From contig OZ059896.1 of assembly GCA_964057225.1 (NCBI GenBank), positions 4,712,001 through 4,776,000 of the forward strand: DNA of 64,000 nt, in the 5' to 3' direction. Of this stretch, positions 3,001 to 35,911 are shown piece by piece. This stretch comes from Auanema rhodensis. Taxonomy: Eukaryota; Animalia; Nematoda. The position numbers and the translations under genes were made by a program. The notes under the pieces were generated by a model, which was not told the DNA's origin, did no database searches, and saw only the letters and a list, made by a program, of their open reading frames with translations. The number at the start of each line of letters is the position of its first letter. The stretch's first letter is position 1.

Positions 3001-6000
3001 CATCGTTTTTGCCTTGAAAGAAGGAATCTAAAAACATCTACTTTTTGCTAAATTATTTTGAAATTTTTCGAAAAAATTTTTGTCAAAATGTTTTTGGAAG
3101 CAATGTTGAGTGTACATGGAAACTCAACATACACTAATGCATCATTTTTCAAACGATCATAACTAATTTTTGTATTAAGCTTTCCTCAATGTAATATAGT
3201 GCATTCGATGCGGACTTTTAAGCTGCGTCGATCTATGTTATCAGATTTGCGCTAGCTTAAAAATGCACCGAGATATCAACTGATATAAGTTCACACTTAT
3301 ATCCTCGATTTTCACCCTGAAGAATTAATTTTTTCGTTGAATAACATTGTCCATCGTTTTTGCCTTGAAAGAAGGAATCTAAAAACATCTACTTTTTGCT
3401 AAATTATTTTGAAATTTTTCGAAAAAATTTTTGTCAAAATGTTTTTGGAAGCAATGTTGAGTGTACATGGAAACTCAACATACACTAATGCATCATTTTT
3501 CAAACGATCATAACTAATTTTTGTATTGAGCGTTTCTTAATCTATTATAGTGCATTCGATGCGGATTTTTAAGCTGCTTCGATCTGTGTTATCAGATTTG
3601 CGCTAGCTTAAAAATGCACCGAGATATCAACTGATATAAGTTCACACTTATATCCTCGATTTTCACCCTGAAGAATTAATTTTTTCGTTGAATAACATTG
3701 TCCATCGTTTTTGCCTTGAAAGAAGGAATCTAAAAACATCTACTTTTTGCTAAATTATTTTGAAATTTTTCGAAAAAATTTTTGTCAAAATGTTTTTGGA
3801 AGCAATGTTGAGTGTACATGGAAACTCAACATACACTAATGCATCATTTTTCAAACGATCATAACTAATTTTTGTATTAAGCTTTCCTCAATGTAATATA
3901 GTGCATTCGATGCGGACTTTTAAGCTGCGTCGATCTATGTTATCAGATTTGCGCTAGCTTAAAAATGCACCGAGATATCAACTGATATAAGTTCACACTT
4001 ATATCCTCGATTTTCACCCTGAAGAATTAATTTTTTCGTTGAATAACATTGTCCATCGTTTTTGCCTTGAAAGATGGAATCTAAAAACATCTACTTTTTG
4101 CTAAATTATTTTGAAATTTTTCGAAAAAATTTTTGTCAAAATGTTTTTGGAAGCAATGTTGAGTGTACATGGAAACTCAACATACACTAATGCATCATTT
4201 TTCAAACGATCATAACTAATTTTTGTATTAAGCTTTTCTCAATGTAATATAGTGCATTCGATGCGGATTTTTAAGCTGCTTCGATCTGTGTTATCAGATT
4301 TGCGCTAGCTTAAAAATGCACCGAGATATCAACTGATATAAGTTCACACTTATATCCTCGATTTTCACCCTGAAGAATTAATTTTTTCGTTGAATAACAT
4401 TGTCCATCGTTTTTGCCTCGAAAAAAGGAATCTAAAAACATCTACTTTTTGCTAAATTATTTTGAAATTTTTCGAAAAAATTTTTGTCAAAATGTTTTTG
4501 GAAGCAATTTTGAGTGTACATGGAAACTCAACATACACTAATGCATCATTTTTCAAACAATCATAACTAATTTTTGTATTAAGCTTTCCTCAATGTAATA
4601 TAGTGCATTCGATGCGGATTTTTAAGCTGCGTCGATCTGTGTTATCAGATTTGCGCTAGCTTAAAAATGCACCGAGATATCAACTGATATAAGTTCACAC
4701 TTATATCCTCGATTTTCACCCTGAAGAATTAATTTTTTCGTTAAATAACATTGTCCATCGTTTTTGCCTTGAAAAAAGGAATCTAAAAACATCTACTTTT
4801 TGCTAAATTATTTTGAAATTTTTCGAAAAAATTTTTGTCAAAATGTTTTTGGAAGCAATTTTGAGTGTACATGGAAACTCAACATACACTAATGCATCAT
4901 TTTTCAAACGATCATAACTAATTTTTGTATTGAGCGTTTCTTAATCTATTATAGTGCATTCGATGCGGATTTTTAAGCTGCTTCGATCTGTGTTATCAGA
5001 TTTGCGCTAGCTTAAAAATGCACCGAGATATCAACTGATATAAGTTCACACTTATATCCTCGATTTTCACCCTGAAGAATTAATTTTTTCGTTGAATAAC
5101 ATTGTCCATCGTTTTTGCCTTGAAAGAAGGAATCTAAAAACATCTACTTTTTGCTAAATTATTTTGAAATTTTTCGAAAAAATTTTTGTCAAAATGTTTT
5201 TGGAAGCAATGTTGAGTGTACATGGAAACTCAACATACACTAATGCATCATTTTTCAAACGATCATAACTAATTTTTGTATTAAGCTTTCCTCAATGTAA
5301 TATAGTGCATTCGATGCGGACTTTTAAGCTGCGTCGATCTATGTTATCAGATTTGCGCTAGCTTAAAAATGCACCGAGATATCAACTGATATAAGTTCAC
5401 ACTTATATCCTCGATTTTCACCCTGAAGAATTAATTTTTTCGTTGAATAACATTGTCCATCGTTTTTGCCTTGAAAGAAGGAATCTAAAAACATCTACTT
5501 TTTGCTAAATTATTTTGAAATTTTTCGAAAAAATTTTTGTCAAAATGTTTTTGGAAGCAATGTTGAGTGTACATGGAAACTCAACATACACTAATGCATC
5601 ATTTTTCAAACGATCATAACTAATTTTTGTATTGAGCGTTTCTTAATCTATTATAGTGCATTCGATGCGGATTTTTAAGCTGCTTCGATCTGTGTTATCA
5701 GATTTGCGCTAGCTTAAAAATGCACCGAGATATCAACTGATATAAGTTCACACTTATATCCTCGATTTTCACCCTGAAGAATTAATTTTTTCGTTGAATA
5801 ACATTGTCCATCGTTTTTGCCTTGAAAGAAGGAATCTAAAAACATCTACTTTTTGCTAAATTATTTTGAAATTTTTCGAAAAAATTTTTGTCAAAATGTT
5901 TTTGGAAGCAATGTTGAGTGTACATGGAAACTCAACATACACTAATGCATCATTTTTCAAACGATCATAACTAATTTTTGTATTAAGCTTTCCTCAATGT

Positions 6001-9000
6001 AATATAGTGCATTCGATGCGGACTTTTAAGCTGCGTCGATCTATGTTATCAGATTTGCGCTAGCTTAAAAATGCACCGAGATATCAACTGATATAAGTTC
6101 ACACTTATATCCTCGATTTTCACCCTGAAGAATTAATTTTTTCGTTGAATAACATTGTCCATCGTTTTTGCCTTGAAAGATGGAATCTAAAAACATCTAC
6201 TTTTTGCTAAATTATTTTGAAATTTTTCGAAAAAATTTTTGTCAAAATGTTTTTGGAAGCAATGTTGAGTGTACATGGAAACTCAACATACACTAATGCA
6301 TCATTTTTCAAACGATCATAACTAATTTTTGTATTAAGCTTTTCTCAATGTAATATAGTGCATTCGATGCGGATTTTTAAGCTGCTTCGATCTGTGTTAT
6401 CAGATTTGCGCTAGCTTAAAAATGCACCGAGATATCAACTGATATAAGTTCACACTTATATCCTCGATTTTCACCCTGAAGAATTAATTTTTTCGTTGAA
6501 TAACATTGTCCATCGTTTTTGCCTCGAAAAAAGGAATCTAAAAACATCTACTTTTTGCTAAATTATTTTGAAATTTTTCGAAAAAATTTTTGTCAAAATG
6601 TTTTTGGAAGCAATTTTGAGTGTACATGGAAACTCAACATACACTAATGCATCATTTTTCAAACAATCATAACTAATTTTTGTATTAAGCTTTCCTCAAT
6701 GTAATATAGTGCATTCGATGCGGATTTTTAAGCTGCGTCGATCTGTGTTATTAGATTTGCGCTAGCTTAAAAATGCACCGAGATATCAACTGATATAAGT
6801 TCACACTTATATCCTCGATTTTCACCCTGAAGAATTAATTTTTTCGTTAAATAACATTGTCCATCGTTTTTGCCTTGAAAAAAGGAATCTAAAAACATCT
6901 ACTTTTTGCTAAATTATTTTGAAATTTTTCGAAAAAATTTTTGTCAAAATGTTTTTGGAAGCAATTTTGAGTGTACATGGAAACTCAACATACACTAATG
7001 CATCATTTTTCAAACGATCATAACTAATTTTTGTATTGAGCGTTTCTTAATCTATTATAGTGCATTCGATGCGGATTTTTAAGCTGCTTCGATCTGTGTT
7101 ATCAGATTTGCGCTAGCTTAAAAATGCACCGAGATATCAACTGATATAAGTTCACACTTATATCCTCGATTTTCACCCTGAAGAATTAATTTTTTCGTTG
7201 AATAACATTGTCCATCGTTTTTGCCTTGAAAGAAGGAATCTAAAAACATCTACTTTTTGCTAAATTATTTTGAAATTTTTCGAAAAAATTTTTGTCAAAA
7301 TGTTTTTGGAAGCAATGTTGAGTGTACATGGAAACTCAACATACACTAATGCATCATTTTTCAAACGATCATAACTAATTTTTGTATTAAGCTTTCCTCA
7401 ATGTAATATAGTGCATTCGATGCGGACTTTTAAGCTGCGTCGATCTATGTTATCAGATTTGCGCTAGCTTAAAAATGCACCGAGATATCAACTGATATAA
7501 GTTCACACTTATATCCTCGATTTTCACCCTGAAGAATTAATTTTTTCGTTGAATAACATTGTCCATCGTTTTTGCCTTGAAAGATGGAATCTAAAAACAT
7601 CTACTTTTTGCTAAATTATTTTGAAATTTTTCGAAAAAATTTTTGTCAAAATGTTTTTGGAAGCAATTTTGAGTGTACATGGAAACTCAACATACACTAA
7701 TGCATCATTTTTCAAACGATCATAACTAATTTTTGTATTAAGCTTTTCTCAATGTAATATAGTGCATTCGATGCGGTTTTTTAAGCTGCGTCGATCTGTG
7801 TTATCAGATTTGCGCTAGCTTAAAAATGCACCGAGATATTAACTGATATAAGTTCACACTTATATCCTCGATTTTCACCCTGAAGAATTACTTTTTTCGT
7901 TGAATAACATTGTCCATCGTTTTTGCCTCAAAAAAAGGAATCTAAAAACATCTACTTTTTGCGAAATTATTTTGAAATTTTTCGAAAAAGTTTTGTCAAA
8001 ATGTTTTTGGAAGCAATGTTGAGTGTACATGGAAACTCAACATACACTAATGCATCATTTTTCAAACGATCATAACTAATTTTTGTGATGAGCGTTTCTC
8101 CATGTAGTATAATGCATTCGATGCGGATTTTTAAGCTGCTTCGATCTGTGTTATCAGATTTGCGCTAGCTTAAAAATGCACCGAGATATCAACTGATATA
8201 AGTTCACACTTATATCCTCGATTTTCACCCTGAAGAATTAATTTTTTCGTTGAATAACATTGTCCATCGTTTTTGCCTCGAAAAAAGGAATCTAAAAACA
8301 TCTACTTTTTGCTAAATTATTTTGAAATTTTTCGAAAAAATTTTTGTCAAAATGTTTTTGGAAGCAATTTTGAGTGTACATGGAAACTCAACATACACTA
8401 ATGCATCATTTTTCAAACGATCATAACTAATTTTTGTATTAAGCTTTTCTTAATGTAGTATAGTGCATTCGATGCGGACTTTTAAGCTGCGTCGATCTGT
8501 GTTATCAGATTTCCGCTAGCTTAAAAATGCACCGATATATCAACTGATATAAGTTCACACTTATATCCTCGATTTTCACCCTGAAGAATTAATTTTTTCG
8601 TTGGATAACATTGTCCATCGTTTTTGCCTTGAAAAAAGGAATCTAAAAACATCTACTTTTTGCTAAATTATTTTGAAATTTTTCGAAAAAATTTTTGTCA
8701 AAATGTTTTTGGAAGCAATGTTGAGTGTACATGGAAACTCAACATACACTAATGCATCATTTTTCAAACGATCATAACTAATTTTTGTGATGAGCGTTTC
8801 TCCATGTAGTATAGTGCATTCGATGCGGATTTTTAAGCTGCGTCGATCTATGTTATCAGATTTGCGCTAGCTTAAAAATGCACCGAGATATCAACTGATA
8901 TAAGTTCACACTTATATCCTCGATTTTCACCCTGAAGAATTAATTTTTTCGTTGAATAACATTGTCCATCGTTTTTGCCTTGAAAGAAGGAATCTAAAAA

Positions 9001-12000
9001 CATCTACTTTTTGCTAAATTATTTTGAAATTTTTCGAAAAAATTTTTGTCAAAATGTTTTTGGAAGCAATGTTGAGTGTACATGGAAACTCAACATACAC
9101 TAATGCATCATTTTTCAAACGATCATAACTAATTTTTGTGATGAGCGTTTCTCCATGTAGTATAATGCATTCGATGCGGATTTTTAAGCTGCTTCGATCT
9201 GTGTTATCAGATTTGCGCTAGCTTAAAAATGCACCGAGATATCAACTGATATAAGTTCACACTTATATCCTCGATTTTCACCCTGAAGAATTAATTTTTT
9301 CGTTGAATAACATTGTCCATCGTTTTTGCCTTGAAAGATGGAATCTAAAAACATCTACTTTTTGCTAAATTATTTTGAAATTTTTCGAAAAAATTTTTGT
9401 CAAAATGTTTTTGGAAGCAATTTTGAGTGTACATGGAAACTCAACATACACTAATGCATCATTTTTCAAACGATCATAACTAATTTTTGTATTAAGCTTT
9501 TCTCAATGTAATATAGTGCATTCGATGCGGTTTTTTAAGCTGCGTCGATCTGTGTTATCAGATTTGCGCTAGCTTAAAAATGCACCGAGATATTAACTGA
9601 TATAAGTTCACACTTATATCCTCGATTTTCACCCTGAAGAATTAATTTTTTCGTTGAATAACATTGTCCATCGTTTTTGCCTCAAAAAAAGGAATCTAAA
9701 AACATCTACTTTTTGCGAAATTATTTTGAAATTTTTCGAAAAAGTTTTGTCAAAATGTTTTTGGAAGCAATGTTGAGTGTACATGGAAACTCAACATACA
9801 CTAATGCATCATTTTTCAAACGATCATAACTAATTTTTGTGATGAGCGTTTCTCCATGTAGTATAATGCATTCGATGCGGATTTTTAAGCTGCTTCGATC
9901 TGTGTTATCAGATTTGCGCTAGCTTAAAAATGCACCGAGATATCAACTGATATAAGTTCACACTTATATCCTCGATTTTCACCCTGAAGAATTAATTTTT
10001 TCGTTGAATAACATTGTCCATCGTTTTTGCCTCGAAAAAAGGAATCTAAAAACATCTACTTTTTGCTAAATTATTTTGAAATTTTTCGAAAAAATTTTTG
10101 TCAAAATGTTTTTGGAAGCAATTTTGAGTGTACATGGAAACTCAACATACACTAATGCATCATTTTTCAAACGATCATAACTAATTTTTGTATTAAGCTT
10201 TTCTTAATGTAGTATAGTGCATTCGATGCGGACTTTTAAGCTGCGTCGATCTGTGTTATCAGATTTCCGCTAGCTTAAAAATGCACCGATATATCAACTG
10301 ATATAAGTTCACACTTATATCCTCGATTTTCACCCTGAAGAATTAATTTTTTCGTTGGATAACATTGTCCATCGTTTTTGCCTTGAAAAAAGGAATCTAA
10401 AAACATCTACTTTTTGCTAAATTATTTTGAAATTTTTCGAAAAAATTTTTGTCAAAATGTTTTTGGAAGCAATGTTGAGTGTACATGGAAACTCAACATA
10501 CACTAATGCATCATTTTTCAAACGATCATAACTAATTTTTGTATTAAGCTTTTCTTAATGTAGTATAGTGCATTCGATGCGGACTTTTAAGCTGCGTCGA
10601 TCTGTGTTATCAGATTTCCGCTAGCTTAAAAATGCACCGAGATATCAACTGATATAAGTTCACACTTATATCCTCGATTTTCACCCTGAAGAATTAATTT
10701 TTTCGTTGAATAACATTGTCCATCGTTTTTGCCTCGAAAAAAGGAATCTAAAAACATCTACTTTTTGCTAAATTATTTTGAAATTTTTCGAAAAAATTTT
10801 TGTCAAAATGTTTTTGGAAGCAATTTTGAGTGTACATGGAAACTCAACATACACTAATGCATCATTTTTCGAACGATCATAACTAATTTTTGTATTAAGC
10901 TTTTCTTAATGTAGTATAGTGCATTCGATGCGGACTTTTAAGCTGCGTCGATCTGTGTTATCAGATTTCCGCTAGCTTAAAAATGCACCGATATATCAAC
11001 TGATATAAGTTCACACTTATATCCTCGATTTTCACCCTGAAGAATTAATTTTTTCGTTGGATAACATTGTCCATCGTTTTTGCCTTGAAAAAAGGAATCT
11101 AAAAACATCTACTTTTTGCTAAATTATTTTGAAATTTTTCGAAAAAATTTTTGTCAAAATGTTTTTGGAAGCAATGTTGAGTGTACATGGAAACTCAACA
11201 TACACTAATGCATCATTTTTCAAACGATCATAACTAATTTTTGTGATGAGCGTTTCTCCATGTAGTATAGTGCATTCGATGCGGATTTTTAAGCTGCGTC
11301 GATCTATGTTATCAGATTTGCGCTAGCTTAAAAATGCACCGAGATATCAACTGATATAAGTTCACACTTATATCCTCGATTTTCACCCTGAAGAATTAAT
11401 TTTTTCGTTGAATAACATTGTCCATCGTTTTTGCCTTGAAAGAAGGAATCTAAAAACATCTACTTTTTGCTAAATTATTTTGAAATTTTTCGAAAAAATT
11501 TTTGTCAAAATGTTTTTGGAAGCAATGTTGAGTGTACATGGAAACTCAACATACACTAATGCATCATTTTTCAAACGATCATAACTAATTTTTGTGATGA
11601 GCGTTTCTCCATGTAGTATAATGCATTCGATGCGGATTTTTAAGCTGCTTCGATCTGTGTTATCAGATTTGCGCTAGCTTAAAAATGCACCGAGATATCA
11701 ACTGATATAAGTTCACACTTATATCCTCGATTTTCACCCTGAAGAATTAATTTTTTCGTTGAATAACATTGTCCATCGTTTTTGCCTTGAAAGATGGAAT
11801 CTAAAAACATCTACTTTTTGCTAAATTATTTTGAAATTTTTCGAAAAAATTTTTGTCAAAATGTTTTTGGAAGCAATTTTGAGTGTACATGGAAACTCAA
11901 CATACACTAATGCATCATTTTTCAAACGATCATAACTAATTTTTGTATTAAGCTTTTCTCAATGTAATATAGTGCATTCGATGCGGTTTTTTAAGCTGCG

Positions 12001-15000
12001 TCGATCTGTGTTATCAGATTTGCGCTAGCTTAAAAATGCACCGAGATATTAACTGATATAAGTTCACACTTATATCCTCGATTTTCACCCTGAAGAATTA
12101 ATTTTTTCGTTGAATAACATTGTCCATCGTTTTTGCCTCAAAAAAAGGAATCTAAAAACATCTACTTTTTGCGAAATTATTTTGAAATTTTTCGAAAAAG
12201 TTTTGTCAAAATGTTTTTGGAAGCAATGTTGAGTGTACATGGAAACTCAACATTCACTAATGCATCATTTTTCAAACGATCATAACTAATTTTTGTGATG
12301 AGCGTTTCTCCATGTAGTATAATGCATTCGATGCGGATTTTTAAGCTGCTTCGATCTGTGTTATCAGATTTGCGCTAGCTTAAAAATGCACCGAGATATC
12401 AACTGATATAAGTTCACACTTATATCCTCGATTTTCACCCTGAAGAATTAATTTTTTCGTTGAATAACATTGTCCATCGTTTTTGCCTCGAAAAAAGGAA
12501 TCTAAAAACATCTACTTTTTGCTAAATTAATTTGAAATTTTTCGAAAAAATTTTTGTCAAAATGTTTTTGGAAGCAATTTTGAGTGTACATGGAAACTCA
12601 ACATACACTAATGCATCATTTTTCAAACGATCATAACTAATTTTTGTATTAAGCTTTTCTTAATGTAGTATAGTGCATTCGATGCGGACTTTTAAGCTGC
12701 GTCGATCTGTGTTATCAGATTTCCGCTAGCTTAAAAATGCACCGATATATCAACTGATATAAGTTCACACTTATATCCTCGATTTTCACCCTGAAGAATT
12801 AATTTTTTCGTTGGATAACATTGTCCATCGTTTTTGCCTTGAAAAAAGGAATCTAAAAACATCTACTTTTTGCTAAATTATTTTGAAATTTTTCGAAAAA
12901 ATTTTTGTCAAAATGTTTTTGGAAGCAATGTTGAGTGTACATGGAAACTCAACATACACTAATGCATCATTTTTCAAACGATCATAACTAATTTTTGTGA
13001 TGAGCGTTTCTCCATGTAGTATAGTGCATTCGATGCGGATTTTTAAGCTGCGTCGATCTATGTTATCAGATTTGCGCTAGCTTAAAAATGCACCGAGATA
13101 TCAACTGATATAAGTTCACACTTATATCCTCGATTTTCACCCTGAAGAATTAATTTTTTCGTTGAATAACATTGTCCATCGTTTTTGCCTTGAAAGAAGG
13201 AATCTAAAAACATCTACTTTTTGCTAAATTATTTTGAAATTTTTCGAAAAAATTTTTGTCAAAATGTTTTTGGAAGCAATGTTGAGTGTACATGGAAACT
13301 CAACATACACTAATGCATCATTTTTCAAACGATCATAACTAATTTTTGTATTAAGCTTTTCTTAATGTAGTATAGTGCATTCGATGCGGACTTTTAAGCT
13401 GCGTCGATCTGTGTTATCAGATTTCCGCTAGCTTAAAAATGCACCGATATATCAACTGATATAAGTTCACACTTATATCCTCGATTTTCACCCTGAAGAA
13501 TTAATTTTTTCGTTGGATAACATTGTCCATCGTTTTTGCCTTGAAAAAAGGAATCTAAAAACATCTACTTTTTGCTAAATTATTTTGAAATTTTTCGAAA
13601 AAATTTTTGTCAAAATGTTTTTGGAAGCAATGTTGAGTGTACATGGAAACTCAACATACACTAATGCATCATTTTTCAAACGATCATAACTAATTTTTGT
13701 ATTAAGCTTTTCTTAATGTAGTATAGTGCATTCGATGCGGACTTTTAAGCTGCGTCGATCTATGTTATCAGATTTGCGCTAGCTTAAAAATGCACCGAGA
13801 TATCAACTGATATAAGTTCACACTTATATCCTCGATTTTCACCCTGAAGAATTAATTTTTTCGTTGAATAACATTGTCCATCGTTTTTGCCTTGAAAGAA
13901 GGAATCTAAAAACATCTACTTTTTGCTAAATTATTTTGAAATTTTTCGAAAAAATTTTTGTCAAAATGTTTTTGGAAGCAATTTTGAGTGTACATGGAAA
14001 CTCAACATACACTAATGCATCATTTTTCAAACGATCATAACTAATTTTTGTATTAAGCTTTTCTTAATGTAGTATAGTGCATTCGATGCGGACTTTTAAG
14101 CTGCGTCGATCTGTGTTATCAGATTTCCGCTAGCTTAAAAATGCACCGAGATATCAACTGATATAAGTTCACACTTATATCCTCGATTTTCACCCTGAAG
14201 AATTAATTTTTTCGTTGAATAACATTCTCCATCGTTTTTGCCTTGAAAGAAGGAATCTAAAAACATCTACTTTTTGCTAAATTATTTTGAAATTTTTCGA
14301 AAAAATTTTTGTCAAAATGTTTTTGGAAGCAATGTTGAGTGTACATGGAAACTCAACATACACTAATGCATCATTTTTCAAACGATCATAACTAATTTTT
14401 GTATTAAGCTTTCCTCAATGTAATATAGTGCATTCGATGCGGATTTTTAAGCTGCATCGATCTGTGTTATCAGATTTGCGCTAGCTTAAAAATGCACCGA
14501 GATATTAACTGATATAAGTTCACACTTATATCCTCGATTTTCACCCTGAAGAATTAATTTTTTCGTTGAATAACATTGTCCATCGTTTTTGCCTCAAAAA
14601 AAGGAATCTAAAAACATCTACTTTTTGCGAAATTATTTTGAAATTTTTCGAAAAAATTTTGTCAAAATGTTTTTGGAAGCAATGTTGAGTGTACATGGAA
14701 ACTCAACATACACTAATGCATCATTTTTCAAACGATCATAACTAATTTTTGTGATGAGCGTTTCTCCATGTAGTATAATGCATTCGATGCGGATTTTTAA
14801 GCTGCGTCGATCTGTGTTATCAGATTTGCGCTAGCTTAAAAATGCACCGAGATATCAACTGATATAAGTTCACACTTATATCCTCGATTTTCACCCTGAA
14901 GAATTAATTTTTTCGTTGAATAACATTGTCCATCGTTTTTGCCTTGAAAAAAGGAATCTAAAAACATCTACTTTTTGCTAAATTATTTTGAAATTTTTCG

Positions 15001-15682
15001 AAAAAATTTTTGTCAAAATGTTTTTGGAAGCAATTTTGAGTGTACATGGAAACTCAACATACACTAATGCATCATTTTTCAAACGATCATAACTAATTTT
15101 TGTATTAAGCTTTTCTTATTGTAGTATAGTGCATTCGATGCGGACTTTTAAGCTGCGTCGATCTGTGTTATCAGATTTCCGCTAGCTTAAAAATGCACCG
15201 AGATATCAACTGATATAAGTTCACACTTATATTCTCGATTTTCACCCTGAAGAATTAATTTTTTCGTTGGATAACATTGTCCATCGTTTTTGCCTCAAAA
15301 AAAGGAATCTAAAAACATCTACTTTTTGCGAAATTATTTTGAAATTTTTCGAAAAAATTTTGTCAATATAAGTTCACACTTATATCCTCGATTTTCACCC
15401 TGAAGAATTAATTTTTTCGTTGAATAACATTGTCCATCGTTTTTGCCTCGAAAAAAGGAATCTAGAAACACCTACTTTTCGCTAAATTATTTTGAAATTT
15501 TTCGAAAAAATTTTTGTCAAAATGTTTTTGGAAGCAATTTTGAGTGTACATGGAAACGCAACCTACACTAATGCATCATTTTTCAAACGATCATAACTAA
15601 TTTTTGTATTAAGCTTTTCTTAATGTAGTATAGTGCATTCGATGCGGACTTTTAAGCTGCGTCGATCTGTGTTATCAGATTT
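1..15682 (-). repeat. 351-bp satellite array, left subfamily (~44-45 monomers, runs off the window edge)
   Basis: CAAAC(A/G)ATCATAACTAA recurs at 1, 352, 703 and onward. The array is the reverse complement of the one at 35912-64000. Diagnostic variants on the + strand: TTTTTGCTAAATT, CGTTTTTGCC, TTTTTCGAAAAAA. It ends at ...GTTATCAGATTT. Confidence 0.98.
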
Positions 15683-15703
15683 ACTTCAACTTCTAATCAA
15701 CAA

Positions 15704-15728
15704 CCCAACGGCCCTCTTTAGGGCCACA
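15704..15728 (+). promoter_or_regulatory. Histone mRNA 3' stem-loop (SLBP-binding hairpin), orphaned from its coding sequence
   Basis: CCCAAC-GGCCCT-CTTT-AGGGCC-ACA: 6-bp stem and 4-nt loop (15710-15725) with A/C-rich flanks, matching the histone 3' hairpin consensus. C at loop position 1 is the C. elegans form. Confidence 0.9.
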
Positions 15729-16050
15729 TTTAAATTTGATGTATTCATAATGATTTATAATATAATACTGTGTCTGTCTTGTCTTTTTTTGCTATGTAAT
15801 GATAATTGATAGGATATGTTTCGCTGTTATGTAAAGGAGAATCCCTATCTTTGATACTCCATATCCATCTCTATTTTTTTTTATGAATTTCATTAATTAT
15901 GCTTTCATGTTGATAACAACAACAGTGATCATATCTAATGCCTCACATGTTTCTATTCCACGTTTGTTCGCAAATAAACAGTTGTTTATGTTATTCTTAT
16001 CGTTTATATAAAATTTAAATATACATTTCTAGAATTTCTAGCAAAATTAA

Positions 16051-16160
16051 GCGCCAATATGCTTGGTGGCGATTACAATGGGTTTTTGCGCGGTGACCTC
16101 TACAGCACTAGTATATAACGGAGATGCTAGGGTTACTATTCAACACACAGCTTGATCAGC
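16051..16160 (+). promoter_or_regulatory. Putative histone H4 promoter and 5' UTR
   Basis: GC-richer patch with CCAAT (16054-16058), GTATATAA (16111-16118), an initiator-like TCA about 30 nt downstream (16140-16142), and a short leader to the ATG at 16161. Confidence 0.65.
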
Positions 16161-16205
16161 ATGTCTGAACGTGGTAAAGGAGGAAAAGGTCTTGAATTTA
16201 TATGA
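16161..16205 (+). pseudogene. H4: Histone H4 5' fragment (MSERGKGGKGLEFI*)
   Basis: ATG TCT GAA CGT GGT AAA GGA GGA AAA GGT CTT GAA versus canonical H4 MSGRGKGGKGLG: 10/12 identical, and both differences can be explained by GGA>GAA. Homology stops at about 16196. Too short for the ORF track. Confidence 0.88.
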
Positions 16206-16534
16206 TTGAATAATAAAATAGTGATTGACTTATCTGTGCTATGTGCTTGTTGTTGATTAGAAGTTGAAGTAATGATACTGACTACAACCGCTCTTTCTTT
16301 TTTTTAAAATGATATGATTGTTTAGATTTTCATTGCTTGCTTATGCTATTTTGAAAATTTGAATATTCTTAGTGTTGTATTTTTTTTAATTTTTATTTTT
16401 TCTCTTATTTTTTTCATATTTATACTTATATATATAAATATAATGTATATATTGAGAGATTTAGCTAACTAGTTAATATATTAGCATTTGTACAGTTCGG
16501 CTTTCATTGACTTTAGGAATGTGGGCGTGGTTTA

Positions 16535-17195
16535 TTTACTCTAGTATACTCTATACATCTCCTGATAATTGTTTGATCTTATTTATATTTGTTGAAAATT
16601 CTTCACATTTTCTTATTGAAAGTGCTTCTTGATATTTCTTATTTGCTTTTATTATTTGATTTTACAATGACTTGATATAACTTTCTTTTGTATCCTGTTC
16701 ATGGAATGAATAATTATATACTGTAGTATAATTTGTACATCTCTTGATAATTGTTTGTTCTTATTTGTATTTGTAGAAATTTTCCAAAACAAAATGCTTC
16801 TTAACACTTTTTCTTTGTTTTTAATACTTGATTTTACCATGACATGATATAACTTTCTTTCGTATCCTGCTCATGGAATAAATAATAGTTTACTCTAGTA
16901 TACTCTGTACATCTCCTGAAAATTTTCTCATTCTACTTTGTATTCTTTAAAAATTCTTCATGTTTTCTTACTGAAAATACTTCTTGATACTTCTTCTTTG
17001 CTTTTAATACTTGATTTTATCATGACTTGTTATAACTTTTTTTGAAACCTGTTTATATTTAAAATGTTTACTGATACTCTATAGTACGTTATATATCTCT
17101 TGATAATTTTCTCATTCTTCTTGGTATTTGTTAAAATTTTTTTATGTTTTCCTACTGAAGATGCTTCTTGATACTTTTTTTTGTTTTTAATACTT
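16535..17195 (-). repeat. ~180-bp satellite block 1 (T-rich strand on +; outermost monomers diverged)
   Basis: TTTACTCTAGTATACT...CTTGATAATTTTCTCATTC monomers begin just after GTGGGCGTGG at 16521-16530. Confidence 0.9.
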
Positions 17196-19412
17196 GAAGC
17201 ATTTTCAGTAAGAAAACATGAAGAAATTTTAACAAATACAAAGAAGAATGAGAAAATTATCAAGAGATGTACAAAGTATACTAGAGTAAACTATTATTTT
17301 ATCCATGAACAGGATACGAAAGAAAGTTATATCAAGTCATTGAAAAATCAAGTATTAAAAACAAAGAAAAAGTATCAAGAAGCATTTTCAGTAAGAAAAC
17401 ATGAAGAAATTTTAAAGAATACAATTAAGAATGAGAAAATTATCAGGAGATGTACAAAGTATACTAGAGTAAACTATTATTTATTCCATGAACAGGATAC
17501 GAAAGAAAGTTATAACAAGTCATGGTAAAATCAAGTATTAAAAACAAAAAAAAAGTATCAAGAAGCATTTTCAGTAAGAAAACATGAAGAAATTTTAACA
17601 AATACAAATAAGAATGAGAAAATTATCAAGAGATGTATAACATATTATAGAGTATCAGTAAACATTTAAAATATGAACAGGTTTCAAAAAAAGTAATATC
17701 AACTCATGGGGAAATCAAGTTTTAAAAGCAAAGAAGAAGTATCAAGAAGGATTTTCATTAAGAAAACATGAAGAAATTTTAACAAATACAAATAAGAATG
17801 AGAAAATTATCAAGAGATGTATAACATATTATAGAGTATCAGTAAACATTTAAAATATGAACAGGTTTCAAAAAAAGTAATATCAATTCATGGGTAAGTA
17901 TTAAAAGCAGAGAAGAAGTATCAAGAAGGATTTTCAGTAAGAAAACATGAAGAAATTTTAACAAATACAAAGAAGAATGAAAAAATTATCAAGAGATGCA
18001 TAACGTATTATAGAGTATCAGTAAACATTTAAAATATGAACAGATTTCAAAAAAAGTAATATCATTTCATGGGGAGGTATTAAAAACAAAAAAAAGTATC
18101 AAGAAGCATTTTCAGTAAGATAACATGAAGAAATTTCAACAAATACAAAAAAGAATGAGAAAATTATCGAAAGATGCATAACATATTATAGAGTATCAGT
18201 AAACATTTGGAATATGAACAGGTTTCAAAAAAAGTAATATCAATTCATGGGGAAGTATTAAAAGCAGAGAAGAAGTATCAAGAAGGATTTTCAGTAAGAA
18301 AACATGAAGAAATTTTAACAAATACAAAGAAGAATGAAAAAATTATCAAGAGATGCATAACGTATAATAGAGTATCAGTAAACATTTAAAATATGAACAG
18401 GTTTCAAAAAAGGTAATATCATTTCATGGGGAAGTATTAAAAGCAAAGAAGAAGTATCAAGAAGGATTTTCAATAAGAAAACATGAAGAAATTTTAACAA
18501 ATACAAAGAAGAATGAAAAAATTATCAAGAGATGCATAACGTATTGTAGAGTATCAGTAAACATTTAAAATATGAACAGATTTCAAAAAAAGTAATATCA
18601 TTTCATGGGGAAGTATTAAAAACAAAAAAAAGTATCAAGAAGCATTTTCAGTAAGATAACATGAAGAAATTTCAACAAATACAAAAAAGAATGAGAAAAT
18701 TATCGAAAGATGCATAACATATTATAGAGTATCAGTAAACATTTGGAATATGAACAGGTTTCAAAAAAAGTAATATCAATTCATGGAGAAGTATTAAAAG
18801 CAGAGAAGAAGTATCAAGAAGGATTTTCAGTAAGAAAACATGAAGAAATTTTAACAAATACAAAGAAGAATGAAAAAATTATCAAGAGATGCATAACGTA
18901 TTATAGAGTATCAGTAAACATTTAAAATATGAACAGATTTCGAAAAAAGTAATATCATTTCATGGGGAAGTATTAAAAGCAAAGAAGAAGTATCAAGAAG
19001 GATTTTCAATAAGAAAACATGAAGAAATTTTAACAAATACAAAGAAGAATGAAAAAATTATCAAGAGATGCATAACGTATTATAGAGTATCAGTAAACAT
19101 TTAAAATATGAACAGGTTTCAAAAAAAGTAATATCATTTCATGGGGAAGTATTAAAAGCAAAGAAGAAGTATCAAGAAGGATTTTCAATAAGAAAACATG
19201 AAGAAATTTTAACAAATACAAAGAAGAATGAAAAAATTATCAAGAGATGCATAACGTATTATAGAGTATCAGTAAACATTTAAAATATGAACAGGTTTCA
19301 AAAAAAGTAATATCATTTCATGGGGAAGTATTAAAAGCAAAGAAGAAGTATCAAGAAGGATTTTCAATAAGAAAACATGAAGAAATTTCAACAAATACAA
19401 ATAAGAATGAAA
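17196..19412 (+). repeat. ~180-bp satellite block 2 (A-rich strand on +, ~12 monomers, inverted relative to its neighbours)
   Basis: GAAGCATTTTCAGTAAGAAAACATGAAGAAATTTT repeats with 179-bp and 183-bp monomer classes. Junctions: TACTTGA|AGCATTTTC (~17196) and AAGAATGAAA|GAA|CCTTCTTG (~19413). Confidence 0.95.
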
Positions 19413-19415
19413 GAA

Positions 19416-22400
19416 CCTTCTTGATACTTCTTCTTTGCTTTTAAAACTTGATTTTACCATGACTTGTTATAACTTTTTTTGAAACCTGTTCATATTTAAA
19501 ATGTTTACTGATACTCTATAGTACGTTATATATCTCTTGATAATTTTCTCATTCTTATTTGTATTTGTTGAAATTTCTTCATGTTTTCTTATTGAAAATC
19601 CTTCTTGTTACTTCTTCTTTGCTTTTAATACTTCCCCATGAAATGATATTACCTTTTTTGAAACCTGTTCATATTTTAAATGTTTACTGATACTCTATAA
19701 TATGTTATACATCTCTTGATAATTTTCTCATTCTTATTTGTATTTGTTGAAATTTCTTCATGTTATCTTACTGAAAATGCTTCATGATACTTCTTCTTTG
19801 CTTTTAATACTTCCCCATGAAATGATATTACCTTTTTTGAAACCTGTTCATATTTTAAATGTTTACTGATACTCTATTATACGTTATGCATCTCTTGATA
19901 ATTTTTTCATTCTTCTTTGTATTTGTTAAAATTTCTTCATGTTTTCTTATTGAAAATCCTTCTTGTTACTTCTTCTTTGCTTTTAATACTTCCCCATGAA
20001 ATGATATTACCTTTTTTGAAACCTGTTCATATTTTAAATGTTTACTGATACTCTATAATATGTTATACATCTCTTGATAATTTTCTCATTCTTATTTGTA
20101 TTTGTTGAAATTTCTTCATGTTTTCTTACTGAAAATCCTTCTTGATACTTCTTCTCTGCTTTTAATACTTCCCCATGAATTGATATTACTTTTTTTGAAA
20201 CCTGTTCATATTTCAAATGTTTACTGATACTCTATAATATGTTATGCATCTTTCGATAATTTTCTCATTCTTTTTTGTATTTGTTAAAATTTCTTCATGT
20301 TTTCTTACTGAAAATCCTTCTTGATACTTCTTCTTTGCTTTTAAAACTTGATTTTACCATGACTTGTTATAACTTTTTTTGAAACCTGTTCATATTTAAA
20401 ATGTTTACTGATACTCTATAGTACGTTATATATCTCTTGATAATTTTCTCATTCTTATTTGTATTTGTTGAAATTTCTTCATGTTTTCTTATTGAAAATC
20501 CTTCTTGTTACTTCTTCTTTGCTTTTAATACTTCCCCATGAAATGATATTACCTTTTTTGAAACCTGTTCATATTTTAAATGTTTACTGATACTCTATAA
20601 TATGTTATACATCTCTTGATAATTTTCTCATTCTTATTTGTATTTGTTGAAATTTCTTCATGTTATCTTACTGAAAATGCTTCTTGATACTTTTTTTTGT
20701 TTTTAATACTTGATTTTACCTTGACTTGATATTACTTTCTTTCGTATCATGTTCATGGAATAAATAATAGTTTACTCTAGTATACTTTGTACATCTCTTG
20801 ATAATTTTCTCATTCTTATTTGTATTTGTTGAAATTTCTTCATGTTTTCTTATTGAAAATCCTTCTTGATACTTCTTCTTCGCTTTTAATACTTCCCCAT
20901 GAAATGATATTACTTTTTTTGAAACCTGTTCATATTTTAAATGTTTACTGATACTCTATTATACGTTATGCATCTCTTGATAATTTTTTCATTCTTCTTT
21001 GTATTTGTTAAAATTTCTTCATGTTTTCTTACTGAAAATCCTTCTTGATACTTCTTCTCTGCTTTTAATACTTCCCCATGAATTGATATTACTTTTTTTG
21101 AAACCTGTTCATATTTCAAATGTTTACTGATACTCTATAATATGTTATGCATCTTTCGATAATTTTCTCATTCTTTTTTGTATTTGTTAAAATTTCTTCA
21201 TGTTTTCTTACTGAAAATCCTTCTTGATACTTCTTCTTTGCTTTTAAAACTTGATTTTACCATGACTTGTTATAACTTTTTTTGAAACCTGTTCATATTT
21301 AAAATGTTTACTGATACTCTATAGTACGTTATATATCTCTTGATAATTTTCTCATTCTTATTTGTATTTGTTGAAATTTCTTCATGTTTTCTTATTGAAA
21401 ATCCTTCTTGTTACTTCTTCTTTGCTTTTAATACTTCCCCATGAAATGATATTACCTTTTTTGAAACCTGTTCATATTTTAAATGTTTACTGATACTCTA
21501 TAATATGTTATACATCTCTTGATAATTTTCTCATTCTTATTTGTATTTGTTGAAATTTCTTCATGTTATCTTACTGAAAATGCTTCTTGATACTTTTTTT
21601 TGTTTTTAATACTTGATTTTACCTTGACTTGATATTACTTTCTTTCGTATCATGTTCATGGAATAAATAATAGTTTACTCTAGTATACTTTGTACATCTC
21701 TTGATAATTTTCTCATTCTTATTTGTATTTGTTGAAATTTCTTCATGTTTTCTTATTGAAAATCCTTCTTGATACTTCTTCTTCGCTTTTAATACTTCCC
21801 CATGAAATGATATTACTTTTTTTGAAACCTGTTCATATTTTAAATGTTTACTGATACTCTATAATATGTTATGCATCTTTCGATAATTTTCTCATTCTTT
21901 TTTGTATTTGTTAAAATTTCTTCATGTTTTCTTACTGAAAATCCTTCTTGATACTTCTTCTTTGCTTTTAAAACTTGATTTTACCATGACTTGTTATAAC
22001 TTTTTTTGAAACCTGTTCATATTTAAAATGTTTACTGATACTCTATAGTACGTTATATATCTCTTGATAATTTTCTCATTCTTATTTGTATTTGTTGAAA
22101 TTTCTTCATGTTTTCTTATTGAAAATCCTTCTTGTTACTTCTTCTTTGCTTTTAATACTTCCCCATGAAATGATATTACCTTTTTTGAAACCTGTTCATA
22201 TTTTAAATGTTTACTGATACTCTATAATATGTTATACATCTCTTGATAATTTTCTCATTCTTATTTGTATTTGTTGAAATTTCTTCATGTTATCTTACTG
22301 AAAATGCTTCTTGATACTTTTTTTTGTTTTTAATACTTGATTTTACCTTGACTTGATATTACTTTCTTTCGTATCATGTTCATGGAATAAATAATAGTTT

Positions 22401-25400
22401 ACTCTAGTATACTTTGTACATCTCTTGATAATTTTCTCATTCTTATTTGTATTTGTTGAAATTTCTTCATGTTTTCTTATTGAAAATCCTTCTTGATACT
22501 TCTTCTTCGCTTTTAATACTTCCCCATGAAATGATATTACTTTTTTTGAAACCTGTTCATATTTTAAATGTTTACTGATACTCTATTATACGTTATGCAT
22601 CTCTTGATAATTTTTTCATTCTTCTTTGTATTTGTTAAAATTTCTTCATGTTTTCTTACTGAAAATCCTTCTTGATACTTCTTCTCTGCTTTTAATACTT
22701 CCCCATGAATTGATATTACTTTTTTTGAAACCTGTTCATATTTCAAATGTTTACTGATACTCTATAATATGTTATGCATCTTTCGATAATTTTCTCATTC
22801 TTTTTTGTATTTGTTAAAATTTCTTCATGTTTTCTTACTGAAAATCCTTCTTGATACTTCTTCTTTTCTTTTAAAACTTGATTTTACCATGACTTGTTAT
22901 AACTTTTTTTGAAACCTGTTCATATTTAAAATGTTTACTGATACTCTATAGTACGTTATATATCTCTTGATAATTTTCTCATTCTTATTTGTATTTGTTG
23001 AAATATCTTCATGTTTTCTTATTGAAAATCCTTCTTGATACTTCTTCTTTGCTTTTAAAACTTGATTTTACCATGATTTGTTATAACTTTTTTTGAAACC
23101 TGTTCATATTTTAAATGTTTACTGATACTCTATAATACGTTATGCATCTCTTGATAATTTTTTCATTCTTCTTTGTATTTGTTAAAAATTTCTTCATGTT
23201 TTCTTACTGAAAATCCTTCTTGATACTTCTTCTCTGCTTTTAATACTTCCCCATGAATTGATATTACTTTTTTTGAAACCTGTTCATATTTCAAATGTTT
23301 ACTGATACTCTATAATATGTTATGCATCTTTCGATAATTTTCTCATTCTTTTTTGTATTTGTTAAAATTTCTTCATGTTTTCTTACTGAAAATCCTTCTT
23401 GATACTTCTTCTTTTCTTTTAAAACTTGATTTTACCATGACTTGTTATAACTTTTTTTGAAACCTGTTCATATTTAAAATGTTTACTGATACTCTATAGT
23501 ACGTTATATATCTCTTGATAATTTTCTCATTCTTATTTGTATTTGTTGAAATATCTTCATGTTTTCTTATTGAAAATCCTTCTTGATACTTCTTCTTTGC
23601 TTTTAAAACTTGATTTTACCATGACTTGTTATAACTTTTTTTGAAACCTGTTTATATTTAAAATGTTTACTGATACTCTATAGTACGTTATATATCTCTT
23701 GATAATTTTCTCATTCTTATTTGTATTTGTTGAAATATCTTCATGTTTTCTTATTGAAAATCCTTCTTGATACTTCTTCTTTGCTTTTAATACTTCCCCA
23801 TGAAATGATATTACTTTTTTCGAAATCTGTTCATATTTTAAATGTTTACTGATACTCTATAATACGTTATGCATCTCTTGATAATTTTTTCATTCTTCTT
23901 TGTATTTGTTAAAATTTCTTCATGTTTTCTTACTGAAAATCCTTCTTGATACTTCTTCTCTGCTTTTAATACTTCCCCATGAATTGATATTACTTTTTTT
24001 GAAACCTGTTCATATTCCAAATGTTTACTGATACTCTATAATATGTTATGCATATTTCGATAATTTTCTCATTCTTTTTTGTATTTGTTAAAATTTCTTC
24101 ATGTTTTCTTACTGAAAATCCTTCTTGATACTTCTTCTTTGCTTTTAAAACTTGATTTTACCATGACTTGTTATAACTTTTTTTGAAACCTGTTCATATT
24201 TAAAATGTTTACTGATACTCTATAGTACGTTATATATCTCTTGATAATTTTCTCATTCTTCTGTGTATTTGTTAAAATTTCTTCATGTTTTCCTACTGAA
24301 GATGCTTCTTGATACTTTTTTTTGTTTTTAATACTTGATTTTACCATGACTTGTTATAACTTTCTTTCGTATCATGTTCATGGAATAAATAATATTTTAC
24401 TCTAGTATATTTTGTACATCTCTTGATAATTTTCTCATTCTTTTTTGTATTTGTTAAAATTTCTTCCTGTTTTCTTACTGAAAATGCTTCTTGATACTTT
24501 TTTTTTGTTTTTAATACTTGATTTTATCATGACTTGATTTTACTTTTGTTGAAACCTGTTCATATTTTAAATGTTTACTGATACTCTAGTATACTTTGTA
24601 CATCTTTCGATAATTTTGTCATTCTTTTTTGTATTTGTTAAAATTTCTTCATGTTTTCTTACTGAAAATCCTTCTTGATACTTCTTCTCTGCTTTTAATA
24701 CTTCCCCATGAATTGATATTACTTTTTTTGAAACCTGTTCATATTCCAAATGTTTACTGATACTCTATAATATGTTATGCATATTTCGATAATTTTCTCA
24801 TTCTTTTTTGTATTTGTTAAAATTTCTTCATGTTTTCTTACTGAAAATCCTTCTTGATACTTCTTCTTTGCTTTTAAAACTTGATTTTACCATGACTTGT
24901 TATAACTTTTTTTGAAACCTGTTCATATTTAAAATGTTTACTGATACTCTATAGTACGTTATATATCTCTTGTTAATTTTCTCATTCTTCTGTGTATTTG
25001 TTAAAATTTCTTCATGTTTTCCTACTGAAGATGCTTCTTGATACTTTTTTTTGTTTTTAATACTTGATTTTACCATGACTTGTTATAACTTTCTTTCGTA
25101 TCATGTTCATGGAATAAATAATATTTTACTCTAGTATATTTTGTACATCTCTTGATAATTTTCTCATTCTTTTTTGTATTTGTTAAAATTTCTTCCTGTT
25201 TTCTTACTGAAAATCCTTCTTGATACTTCTTCTTTGCTTTTAAAACTCGATTTTCCCATGAATTGATATTACTTTTTTTGAAACCTGTTCATATTTTAAA
25301 TGTTTACTGATACTCTATAGTACGTTATATATCTCTTGATAATTTTCTCATTCTTCTTTGTATTTGTTAAAATTTCTTCATGTTTTCTTACTGAAAATCC

Positions 25401-28400
25401 TTCTTGATACTTCTTCTTTGCTTTTAAAACTTGATTTTACCATGACTTGTTATAACTTTTTTTGAAACCTGTTCATATTTAAAATGTTTACTGATACTCT
25501 ATAGTACGTTATATATCTCTTGATAATTTTCTCATTCTTATTTGTATTTGTTAAAATTTCTTCATGTTTTCTTACTGAAAATGCTTCTTGATACTTTTTT
25601 TTGTTTTTAAAACTTGATTTTATCATGACTTGATATTACTTTCTTTCGTATCTTGTTCATGTAGTAAATAATTATTTACTCTAGTATACTTTGTACATTT
25701 CTTGATAATTTTCTCATTCTTCTTTGTATTTGTTAAAATTTCTTCATGTTTTCTTACTGAAAATCCTTCTTGATACTTCTTCTTTGCTTTTAAAACTCGA
25801 TTTTCCCATGAATTGATATTACTTTTTTTGAAACCTGTTCATATTTTAAATGTTTACTGATACTCTATAATACGTTATACATTTCTTGATAATTTTCTCA
25901 TTCTTCTTTGTATTTGTTAAAATTTCTTCATGTTTTCTTACTGAAAATCCTTCTTGATACTTCTTCTTTGCTTTTAAAACTTGATTTTACCATGACTTGT
26001 TATAACTTTTTTTGAAACCTGTTCATATTTAAAATGTTTACTGATACTCTATAGTACGTTATATATCTCTTGATAATTTTCTCATTCTTATTTGTATTTG
26101 TTAAAATTTCTTCATGTTTTCTTATTGAAAATCCTTCTTGATACTTCTTCTTTGTTTTTAATACTTGATTTTATCATGACTTGATATTACTTTCTTTCGT
26201 ATCTTGTTCATGTAGTAAATAATTATTTACTCTAGTATACTTTGTACATTTCTTGATAATTTTCTCATTCTTCTTTGTATTTGTTAAAATTTCTTCATGT
26301 TTTCTTACTGAAAATCCTTCTTGATACTTCTTCTTTGCTTTTAAAACTCGATTTTCCCATGAATTGATATTACTTTTTTTGAAACCTGTTCATATTTTAA
26401 ATGTTTACTGATACTCTATAATACGTTATACATTTCTTGATAATTTTCTCATTCTTCTTTGTATTTGTTAAAATTTCTTCATGTTTTCTTATTGAAAATC
26501 CTTCTTGATACTTCTTCTTTGTTTTTAATACTTGATTTTATCATGACTTGATATTACTTTCTTTCGTATCTTGTTCATGTAGTAAATAATTATTTACTCT
26601 AGTATACTTTGTACATTTCTTGATAATTTTCTCATTCTTATTTGTATTTGTTAAAATTTCTTCATGTTTTCTTACTGAAAATGCTTCTTGATACTTTTTT
26701 TTTGTTTTTAATACTTGATTTTACCATGACTTGTTATAACTTTCTTTCGTATCCTGTTCATGGAATAAATAATAGTTTACTCTAGTATACTTTGTACATT
26801 TCTTGATAATTTTCTCATTCTTATTTGTATTTGTTAAAATTTCTTCATGTTTTCTTACTGAAAATCCTTCTTGATACTTCTTCTTTGCTTTTAAAACTTG
26901 ATTTTACCATGACTTGTTATAACTTTTTTTGAAACCTGTTCATATTTAAAATGTTTACTGATACTCTATAGTACGTTATATATCTCTTGATAATTTTCTC
27001 ATTCTTATTTGTATTTGTTAAAATTTCTTCATGTTTTCTTACTGAAAATGCTTCTTGATACTTTTTTTTGTTTTTAATACTTGATTTTACCATGACTTGT
27101 TATAACTTTCTTTCGTATCCTGTTCATGGAATAAATAATAGTTTACTCTAGTATACTTTGTACATCTCCTGATAATTTTCTCATTCTTCTTTGTATTCTT
27201 GAAAATTTCTTCATGTTTTCTTACTGAAAATCCTTCTTGATACTTCTTCTTTGCTTTTAAAACTCGATTTTCCCATGAATTGATATTACTTTTTTTGAAA
27301 CCTGTTCATATTTTAAATGTTTACTGATACTCTATAATACGTTATACATTTCTTGATAATTTTCTCATTCTTCTTTGTATTTGTTAAAATTTCTTCATGT
27401 TTTCTTATTGAAAATCCTTCTTGATACTTCTTCTTTGCTTTTAATACTTCCCCATGAAATGATATTACTTTTTTTGAAACCTGTTCATATTTTAAATGTT
27501 TACTGATACTCTATAATATGTTATGCATCTTTCGATAATTTTCTCATTCTTTTTTGTATTTGTTAAAATTTCTTCATGTTTTCTTACTGAAAATCCTTCT
27601 TGATACTTCTTCTTTGCTTTTAAAACTTGATTTTACCATGACTTGTTATAACTTTTTTTGAAACCTGTTCATATTTAAAATGTTTACTGATACTCTATAA
27701 TACGTTATGCATCTCTTGATAATTTTTTCATTCTTCTTTGTATTTGTTAAAATTTCTTCATGTTTTCTTACTGAAAATCCTTCTTGATACTTTTTTTTTG
27801 TTTTTAATACTTGATTTTATCATGACTTGATATTACTTTTGTTGAAACCTGTTCATATTTTAAATGTTTACTGATACTCTAGTATAATTTGTACATCTTT
27901 CGATAATTTTCTCATTCTTCTTTGTATTTGTTAAAATTTCTTCATGTTTTCTTACTGAAAATCCTTCTTGATACTTCTTCTTTGCTTTTAAAACTTGATT
28001 TTACCATGACTTGTTATAACTTTTTTTGAAACCTGTTCATATTCCAAATGTTTACTGATACTCTATAATATGTTATGCATCTTTCGATAATTTTCTCATT
28101 CTTTTTTGTATTTGTTAAAATTTCTTCATGTTTTCTTACTGAAAATCCTTCTTGATACTTCTTCTTTGCTTTTAAAACTTGATTTTACCATGACTTGTTA
28201 TAACTTTTTTTGAAACCTGTTCATATTTAAAATGTTTACTGATACTCTATAGTACGTTATATATCTCTTGATAATTTTCTCATTCTTCTGTGTATTTGTT
28301 AAAATTTCTTCATGTTTTCCTACTGAAGATGCTTCTTGATACTTTTTTTTGTTTTTAATACTTGATTTTACCATGACTTGTTATAACTTTCTTTCGTATC

Positions 28401-34400: not shown

Positions 34401-34826
34401 GCTTTTAAAACTTGATTTTACCATGACTTGTTATAACTTTTTTTGAAACCTGTTCATATTTAAAATGTTTACTGATACTCTATAGTACGTTATATATCTC
34501 TTGATAATTTTCTCATTCTTCTTTGTATTTGTTAAAATTTCTTCATGTTTTCTTACTGAAAATCCTTCTTGATACTTCTTCTTTGCTTTTAATACTTTCC
34601 CATGAATTGATATTACTTTTTTTGAATCCTGTTCATATTTTAAATGTTTACTGATACTCTATAATACGTTATGCATCTCTTGATAATTTTCTCATTCTTA
34701 TTTGTATTTGTTAAAATTTCTTCATGTTTTCTTACTGAAAATGCTTCTTGATACTTTTTTTTTGTTTTTAATACTTAATTTTTCAATGACTTGTTATAAC
34801 TTTCTTTCGTATCCTGTTCATGGATA
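19416..34826 (-). repeat. ~180-bp satellite block 3 (~15.4 kb, ~85 monomers, several higher-order repeats)
   Basis: Continuous T-rich monomers of about 179-185 bp, with higher-order periods of 900/903, 724, 1468 and 368 bp. Confidence 0.97.
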
Positions 34827-35060
34827 ACAAATAAGAACAAACAATTATCAAGAGATGTACAAATTATACTACAGTATATAATTATTCATTCCATGAACAG
34901 GATACAAAAGAAAGTTATATCAAGTCATTGTAAAATCAAATAATAAAAGCAAAGAAGAAAAATCAAGAAGCACTTTCAATAAGAAAATGTGAAGAATTTT
35001 CAACAAATATAAATAAGATCAAACAATTATCAGGAGATGTATAGAGTATACTAGAGTAAA
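34827..35060 (+). repeat. ~180-bp satellite block 4 (diverged monomers; mirror of 16535-16768)
   Basis: Orientation switch at ...CATGGATAA|CAAATAAGAAC; reverse complement of 16535-16768. Confidence 0.9.
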
Positions 35061-35387
35061 TAAACCACGCCCACATTCCTAACGTCAATGAAAGCCGAAC
35101 TGTACAAATGCTAATATATTAACTAGTTAGCTAAATCTCAATATATACATTATATTTATATATATAAGTATAAATATGAAAAAAAAAAGAGAAAAAATAA
35201 AAATTAAAAAAAATACAACACTAAGAATATTCAAATTTTCAAAATAGCATAAGCAAGCAATGAAAATCTAAACAATCATATCATTTAAAAAAAAAGAAAG
35301 AGCGGTTGTAGTCAGCATCATTACTTCAACTTCTAATCAACAACAAGCACATAGCACAGATAAGTCAATCACTATTTTATTATTCAA

Positions 35388-35432
35388 TCATATAAATTCA
35401 AGACCTTTTCCTCCTTTACCACGTTCAGACAT
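35388..35432 (-). pseudogene. H4: Histone H4 5' fragment, second copy (MSERGKGGKGLEFI*)
   Basis: Exact reverse complement of 16161-16205. Confidence 0.88.
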
Positions 35433-35890: not shown

Positions 35891-35911
35891 TTGTTGATTA
35901 GAAGTTGAAGT

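Follow-up and report, generated by a model that had tools for sequence, protein, structure and literature searches.

Histone orphons are solitary fragments that have split off from the clustered histone genes, and they were first described in sea urchin. The locus described here, which we call the relic, lies in a 64-kb window, by which we mean the whole stretch of DNA analysed. It resembles the orphons in being a piece of a histone cluster found away from any working cluster, incomplete, set within repetitive DNA, and still recognisable by its gene signals. It is unlike them in having no gene body; it is an intergenic slice with just 27 nt of a 3' UTR at one end and 11 codons at the other. 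It also differs in having been multiplied inside a duplication unit of satellite scale. A literature search combining histone orphons with satellites found nothing useful. The other close point of comparison is the 3' end of the C. elegans histone mRNAs. The ends cloned by Keall et al. 2007 read AACGGCCCTCTTTAGGGCCACAT, and their hairpin is bound by CDL-1 (PMC1924863). These mRNAs terminate 3-6 nt past the hairpin, and an AATCC core, then AATAAA, lies downstream of it (PMC1924863). The relic carries the same AACGGCCCTCTTTAGGGCCACAT at 15707-15729, down to the C that opens the loop and is specific to nematodes (PMC1924863). Unlike the C. elegans genes, it has no histone coding sequence 5' of the hairpin, and the AATCC and AATAAA motifs are missing 3' of it. 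In related organisms, the loose contig ends that belong to other histone genes lack these motifs too, and the downstream element may not be conserved in this lineage.

We read the relic, with a probability of about 0.8, as a non-functional fragment, of orphon type, from a nematode cluster of replication-dependent histone genes, hitch-hiking in a large satellite duplication unit. The window contains a 351-bp satellite (satA) and a 184-bp satellite (satB). By tandem-repeat and composition scans, its order is satA (1-15682), the non-satellite piece, an island of satB (~16537-34830), the piece reversed, and satA reversed (35912-64000). The tandem-repeat scan places the arrays themselves at 1-15520, 16791-34821 and 35912-64000. 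A literature search for repeats of these unit sizes found nothing useful, and papers on DNA elimination in Mesorhabditis and Caenorhabditis do not list them. A preprint on Auanema rhodense (10.64898/2026.08.27.747507) describes two tandem repeats in multi-megabase blocks, with units of 167-504 nt, in broad agreement with the window; its four FISH probe sequences are all absent from the window. The initial annotation had described the piece as the only non-satellite DNA in 64 kb. It is non-satellite, and arrays cover the remainder, but a second copy of the same piece is also present. No similarity to satA or satB was found in 15683-16290. A satellite origin of the relic was considered and rejected, the only matches being weak AT-rich ones at 16294-16409. 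On the right, degenerate 184-bp satellite grades in from ~16537. The orientation of satB switches near 17196, 19410 and 34830, so that an RNA running through the island would be self-complementary. The turn at ~34830, beside copy 2, is a short palindromic joint, ctgttcatgga ... tccatgaacag (window 34780-34860). The features are collected in Table 1.

Table 1. Features of the relic, its surroundings and its second copy (window coordinates).
Feature	Position	Strand	Remarks
Final satA monomer, partly rearranged	15366-15682	+	fused to the relic at 15682/15683
Inverted repeat, left arm	15681-15704	.	perfect, 24 nt (TTACTTCAACTTCTAATCAACAAC)
Histone 3' UTR remnant	15683-15709	+	27 nt; ends in the conserved CCAAC flank
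Histone mRNA 3' hairpin	15710-15725	+	GGCCCTCTTTAGGGCC; nematode type, CUUU loop; ACAT follows
Intergenic spacer	15726-16053	+	AT-rich, ~330 bp; without a noteworthy ORF
CCAAT box	16054-16058	+	
TATATAA box	16112-16118	+	49 nt upstream of the ATG
H4 stub	16161-16194	+	ATG, 10 further codons (MSERGKGGKGL, G3E) and base 1 of codon 12
AT-rich non-satellite DNA	16195-16536	+	joined to the H4 stub; not accounted for by the relic reading
Inverted repeat, right arm	16249-16272	.	
Differences between the copies	16037-16041; 16277, 16306, 16407, 16454-5, 16512, 16634, 16641		complex small indel at 16037-16041
Second relic copy	35059-35911	-	mirror image; slice from hairpin to stub 35911-35399
Copy 2 hairpin	35869-35884	-	
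Copy 2 CCAAT box	35535-35539	-	
Copy 2 TATA box	35475-35481	-	
Copy 2 H4 stub	35399-35432	-	
Copy 2 inverted-repeat arms	35321-35344 and 35890-35913		

The elements listed in the initial annotation are all present in 15683-16194, in the order given there and on the single (+) strand. The histone 3' stem-loop is perfect, as had been claimed, and has the same letters as the C. elegans histone mRNA ends and as 22 metagenomic histone loci of nematode type. It folds into a 6-bp stem and a 4-nt loop (-13.2 kcal/mol, z -3.2) and has conserved A/C-rich flanks. The sequence GGCCCTCTTTAGGGCC recurs exactly once in the 64 kb, on the minus strand in the second copy; shuffled sequences give an expectation of 0. 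In an E-value scan, the Rfam Histone3 model (RF00032) matches 15705-15751 with 28.3 bits and E 1e-5. The Rfam scan at the gathering threshold returned nothing across the whole window because that score is under the gathering score of 34 for RF00032. What lowers the score is the CUUU loop, the nematode version of this part of the hairpin. The proposed covariance scan recognises the element by E-value, with a score short of the threshold. Reading upstream from the hairpin, one meets 27 nt of UTR and then satA, and no histone reading frame.

Independent histone loci show where this hairpin ordinarily sits. Metagenome contigs were scanned with a 22-mer around the hairpin, which gave 22 loci, and H2A, H2B, H3 or H4 motifs were recognised at 9 of them. 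Several of the 22 are 100% identical to the relic over 15702-15728. The relic matches these loci in two places only: from 15699/15702 to 15728/15740 at up to 100%, and in the H4 start at 16160-16189 (87%, locus L019). The conserved hairpin block is about 15702-15735, and upstream of 15699-15702 the 3' UTR remnant no longer resembles other histone genes present in public contigs. The metagenomic loci share no promoter motif with the relic apart from the TATA box, which in them is 50-85 nt upstream of the ATG. By this comparison the spacer and promoter are lineage-specific. In locus L019, the genes for H4, H2B, H2A and H3 follow one another head to tail, all on the same strand, and about 300 nt separate a hairpin from the ATG after it. 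This layout indicates that hairpin, spacer, promoter and next gene are a natural arrangement in organisms with this hairpin.

The gene start at the right end of the slice is that of H4. Its ATG is at 16161-16163, a correction to the position first assigned. Past 16193, the frame reads EFI and stops at 16203-16205, and the resulting short ORF is MSERGKGGKGLEFI. A contig from a related organism (run X13) shares the stub to 16194 and then continues with GAAAGGGAGGAGCCAAACGCCATCGTAAGG, which encodes GKGGAKRHRK, true H4. DNA contigs from the same organism (run X1) also share the stub to 16194 and continue with the first nine letters of GAAAGGGAGGAGCCAAACGCCATCGTAAGG. The true H4 continuation in both sets of contigs places the break at 16194/16195. 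Of the "first 11-12 codons of H4" originally reported, 11 match and the twelfth falls on the breakpoint. Likewise, of the G>E changes reported in the stub, G3E is a change inside matching H4, and the second, at codon 12, is the breakpoint itself. G3E is older than the duplication. Thus, 11 matching codons stand against the about 103 of a complete H4 frame. Six-frame reading of 16195-16540 and of 15640-15735 turned up no histone coding sequence next to the relic, and neither of its flanks has a noteworthy ORF. Look-ups of the 42-aa and 58-aa ORFs gave no recorded matches, and no further copies were found by that route. The earlier suggestion of a slice of a histone cluster with both coding bodies lost is supported: the hairpin block and H4 start match nematode-type loci, H4 continues past the break in public contigs, and L019 has a like layout.

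The two seams align by BLAST (15366-16768 to 36228-34827) at 97.4% identity. Within the unique part, 15683-16768 (1086 bp), the copies are separated by about 8 difference events, or ~0.7%. They share the left junction (15682/3 corresponding to 35912/1) and also the H4 break. Since both the satA junction and the H4 break are common, duplication acted on the composite, after one capture of the histone piece rather than two. Judged from their sequence, the two copies represent a recent inverted duplication with identical breakpoints. The satA monomer beside copy 1 (317 nt) differs from its counterpart beside copy 2 at 23 sites, or 7%, and at the five of these sites that are listed, copy 2's letter is the one in most public contigs. 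That the monomers differ by 7% and the unique DNA by 0.7% points either to monomer turnover after the duplication or to an array edge that escaped homogenisation after it. The satA monomer at the copy 1 seam also contains an internal 153-bp duplication (window 15213-15682 compared with 35925-36228).

The order of events that we infer would be the following. The slice taken from the cluster would have comprised one gene's last 27 nt of 3' UTR with its hairpin block, then the spacer, the H4 promoter, the 5' UTR and codons 1-11. On the left, it would have been joined illegitimately to the 351-bp satellite through 2 nt of microhomology; satA ends at 15682 with ...CAGATTT, and the TT is common to both sides of the junction. 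On the right, H4 would have been interrupted at codon 12, its broken end becoming attached to AT-rich DNA that borders the 184-bp satellite. The composite of satA, relic and satB would later have been duplicated as a unit, in inverted orientation here. The elements would look intact because the copies are young and the elements short, rather than through selection.

A large inverted layout within satellites is a classic setting for misassembly, and, with so many repeats in the assembly, a fold-back or a misjoin might have produced the mirror copy. We find this extremely improbable. The arms are asymmetric, the neighbouring satellite monomers are 7% different, and the about 8 difference events involve letters of both versions that occur in independent runs. 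The contigs of four public runs (X1, X3, X10 and X13) were compared with 15500-16700. The G that copy 2 has at 16277 and at 16512 is present in all four, and at 16037-41 the copy-2 form predominates in X1. Such copy-specific letters in independent runs argue that the copies are not one sequence assembled twice. Another structural possibility is suggested by the 24-nt inverted repeat, whose arms are 100% complementary, flank the histone part, and occur in the window at the four expected places only. The 592-bp unit 15681-16272 could accordingly be a non-autonomous DNA transposon with 24-nt terminal inverted repeats and a captured histone fragment. Inside this unit there is 1 difference event between the copies, compared with 7 across the adjoining 492 bp on the right, and there is a TA at each outer end, as in the target duplications of Tc1/mariner elements. 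However, the TA belongs to the palindrome by construction, and the flanks are identical in both window copies. High-depth contigs cross the right arm and its boundary into the same flank (X1 record 8, 16252-16335), which speaks against recent mobility, and the unit was not seen in another context among the contigs listed. Thus, of the features of a MITE-like element, it has the terminal inverted repeats; varied flanks with target-site duplications were not seen among those contigs. A repeat search and inspection by eye found no larger imperfect inverted repeat around the 24-nt arms. Taken together, a mobile cassette is very unlikely. The 24-nt repeat might derive from a convergent sister gene, as a 3' UTR whose hairpin has been lost, from a template switch, or from transposon ends.

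Evidence on transcription comes from run X3, probably RNA. Its RNA nature is a guess, made for four small runs of one 2019 study in which between a fifth and a third of the sampled words are present. The X3 contigs lie on 16070-16373 and 16456-16638, with copy-2 letters and at depths of 14 and 6. No X3 contig falls on satA, the hairpin or the spacer. As satA is about a thousand times commoner than the relic in DNA runs and yet is missing in X3, X3 is more readily understood as RNA. Low-level transcription therefore appears to take in the promoter-proximal part and the stub, together with the right part and the first monomer of satB. The first contig, which is unspliced, starts at 16070, a position 42 nt upstream of the TATA box and directly after the copy-variable site 16069. 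With a start upstream of TATA, in contigs that carry neither strand nor ends, initiation at the H4 promoter is not demonstrated. If there is transcription, leftover or read-through activity is its likeliest explanation.

The public contigs also show how the relic varies outside the window. In X1, a second sequence type of the relic is present at about half depth, and in the related organisms B and C only the second type is seen, at low depth. One contig from organism C, 580 nt long, reaches across 15702-16184 without a break and may represent either a working cluster or another relic. It has 0 differences over 15702-15767, a replacement of 15768-15778 by ~92 nt, and then 30 mismatches and 16 gap letters. 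Most differences between the window and the second type are in the spacer. Among the variants listed in X1, none separates the two types in the hairpin block or in the stub, and 2 do so in the 120-nt promoter, at 16069 and 16119. In the same comparison, there are at least about 16 events in the 303-nt spacer and at least about 9 in the right part. A binomial estimate from the variants listed in X1 gives the deficit in the histone parts a P of about 0.01, a figure to be read with the caution that shared histone k-mers confound contig-based variant calls. The 5' UTR at 16131-16154 is heavily changed in organisms B and C.

The initial annotation had proposed that the regulatory parts were retained or co-opted, citing an intact hairpin and TATA box in both copies. 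The observation is correct, as GGCCCTCTTTAGGGCC is exact at both sites and the TATA box is present in both, but the proposal is unsupported. At a difference of 0.7%, one expects ~0.1 changes in the 16-nt hairpin and 0.05 in the 7-nt TATA box. With copies so young and elements so short, intactness is the null expectation and is uninformative on selection, and the coding stub is equally unchanged. Nor do we read co-option from the deficit of variants among the X1 types. The stub, which is useless to regulation, shares that deficit; constraint on the second type, if it is or recently was a working histone unit, would lower the divergence; and gene conversion and contig collapse bias the positions common to all histone genes. 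The low variation of the hairpin block, promoter core and stub fits parental constraint or gene conversion as well as it fits selection.

Three functional readings have nevertheless to be weighed. The two H4 promoters face inward and could drive transcription into the satB island, where the flips near the three positions given above would yield dsRNA for small-RNA silencing or for marking the repeats. The X3 contigs on 16070-16638 and their absence from satA are in keeping with this, part of the region is also present in three further probable RNA runs from that study, and the promoter core has few variants among the copies listed. We consider such a co-opted promoter decidedly unlikely, since the contig begins 42 nt before the TATA box, not as initiation there predicts, and the contigs are of low depth and give no strand, end or level. 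The RNA status of the runs is itself a guess, and the youth of the copies accounts for their near-identity. At the other end of the relic, satA abuts a perfect hairpin block with the correct flanks, 27 nt past the array end in both copies. Transcripts of satA might reach the hairpin and be cleaved there and stabilised by the histone hairpin-binding protein, given that C. elegans histone mRNAs end 3-6 nt past the same hairpin (PMC1924863). This has very little probability in our estimation. One hairpin per array of 15 to >28 kb would cap only the read-through of the last monomer, and the downstream elements conserved in C. elegans are missing. The absence of X3 contigs from satA, the hairpin and the spacer counts against it more weakly, since poly(A)-selected libraries would miss such RNA. 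Combining the two, a working satellite transcription module, in which the promoter makes satB RNA and the hairpin ends satA RNA, with histone-like timing and feeding a small-RNA or chromatin pathway, is decidedly unlikely. We infer instead that the relic lacks a function, as an orphon-type fragment carried along in the satellite duplication.

Such a fragment serves mainly as a unique and datable tag where two satellites of megabase scale meet. As a marker, it traces duplication and inversion of the arrays and allows monomer turnover to be compared with change in unique DNA, here 7% and 0.7%. The relic would matter more only if its promoter or hairpin were to act on satellite RNA.

Some further observations concern the same sequences elsewhere. 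In X10 and X13, which come from related organisms, summed depth reaches 19,000-42,000 in the bin around the hairpin (15705-15745), and the X10 bin around the H4 start (16156-16196) has 16,600, compared with about 8-11 for the remaining relic. Such depths may reflect histone arrays of very high copy number, or other repeats composed of the hairpin and H4-start pieces. In organism B, a contig matching 16195-16371 (X10 record 13) has 164 nt on its leftward side that do not fit the H4 stub of the window. The right part may thus have a different neighbour in organism B, which would be a clue to its origin. Tandem hairpin blocks, two or three to a locus, occur in the metagenomic histone loci L021, L005, L008, L012, L017 and L018. 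The first two blocks of L021 (positions 170-250) have a broken stem (GGCCCTCTTTAGCGCC), and an intact one follows.
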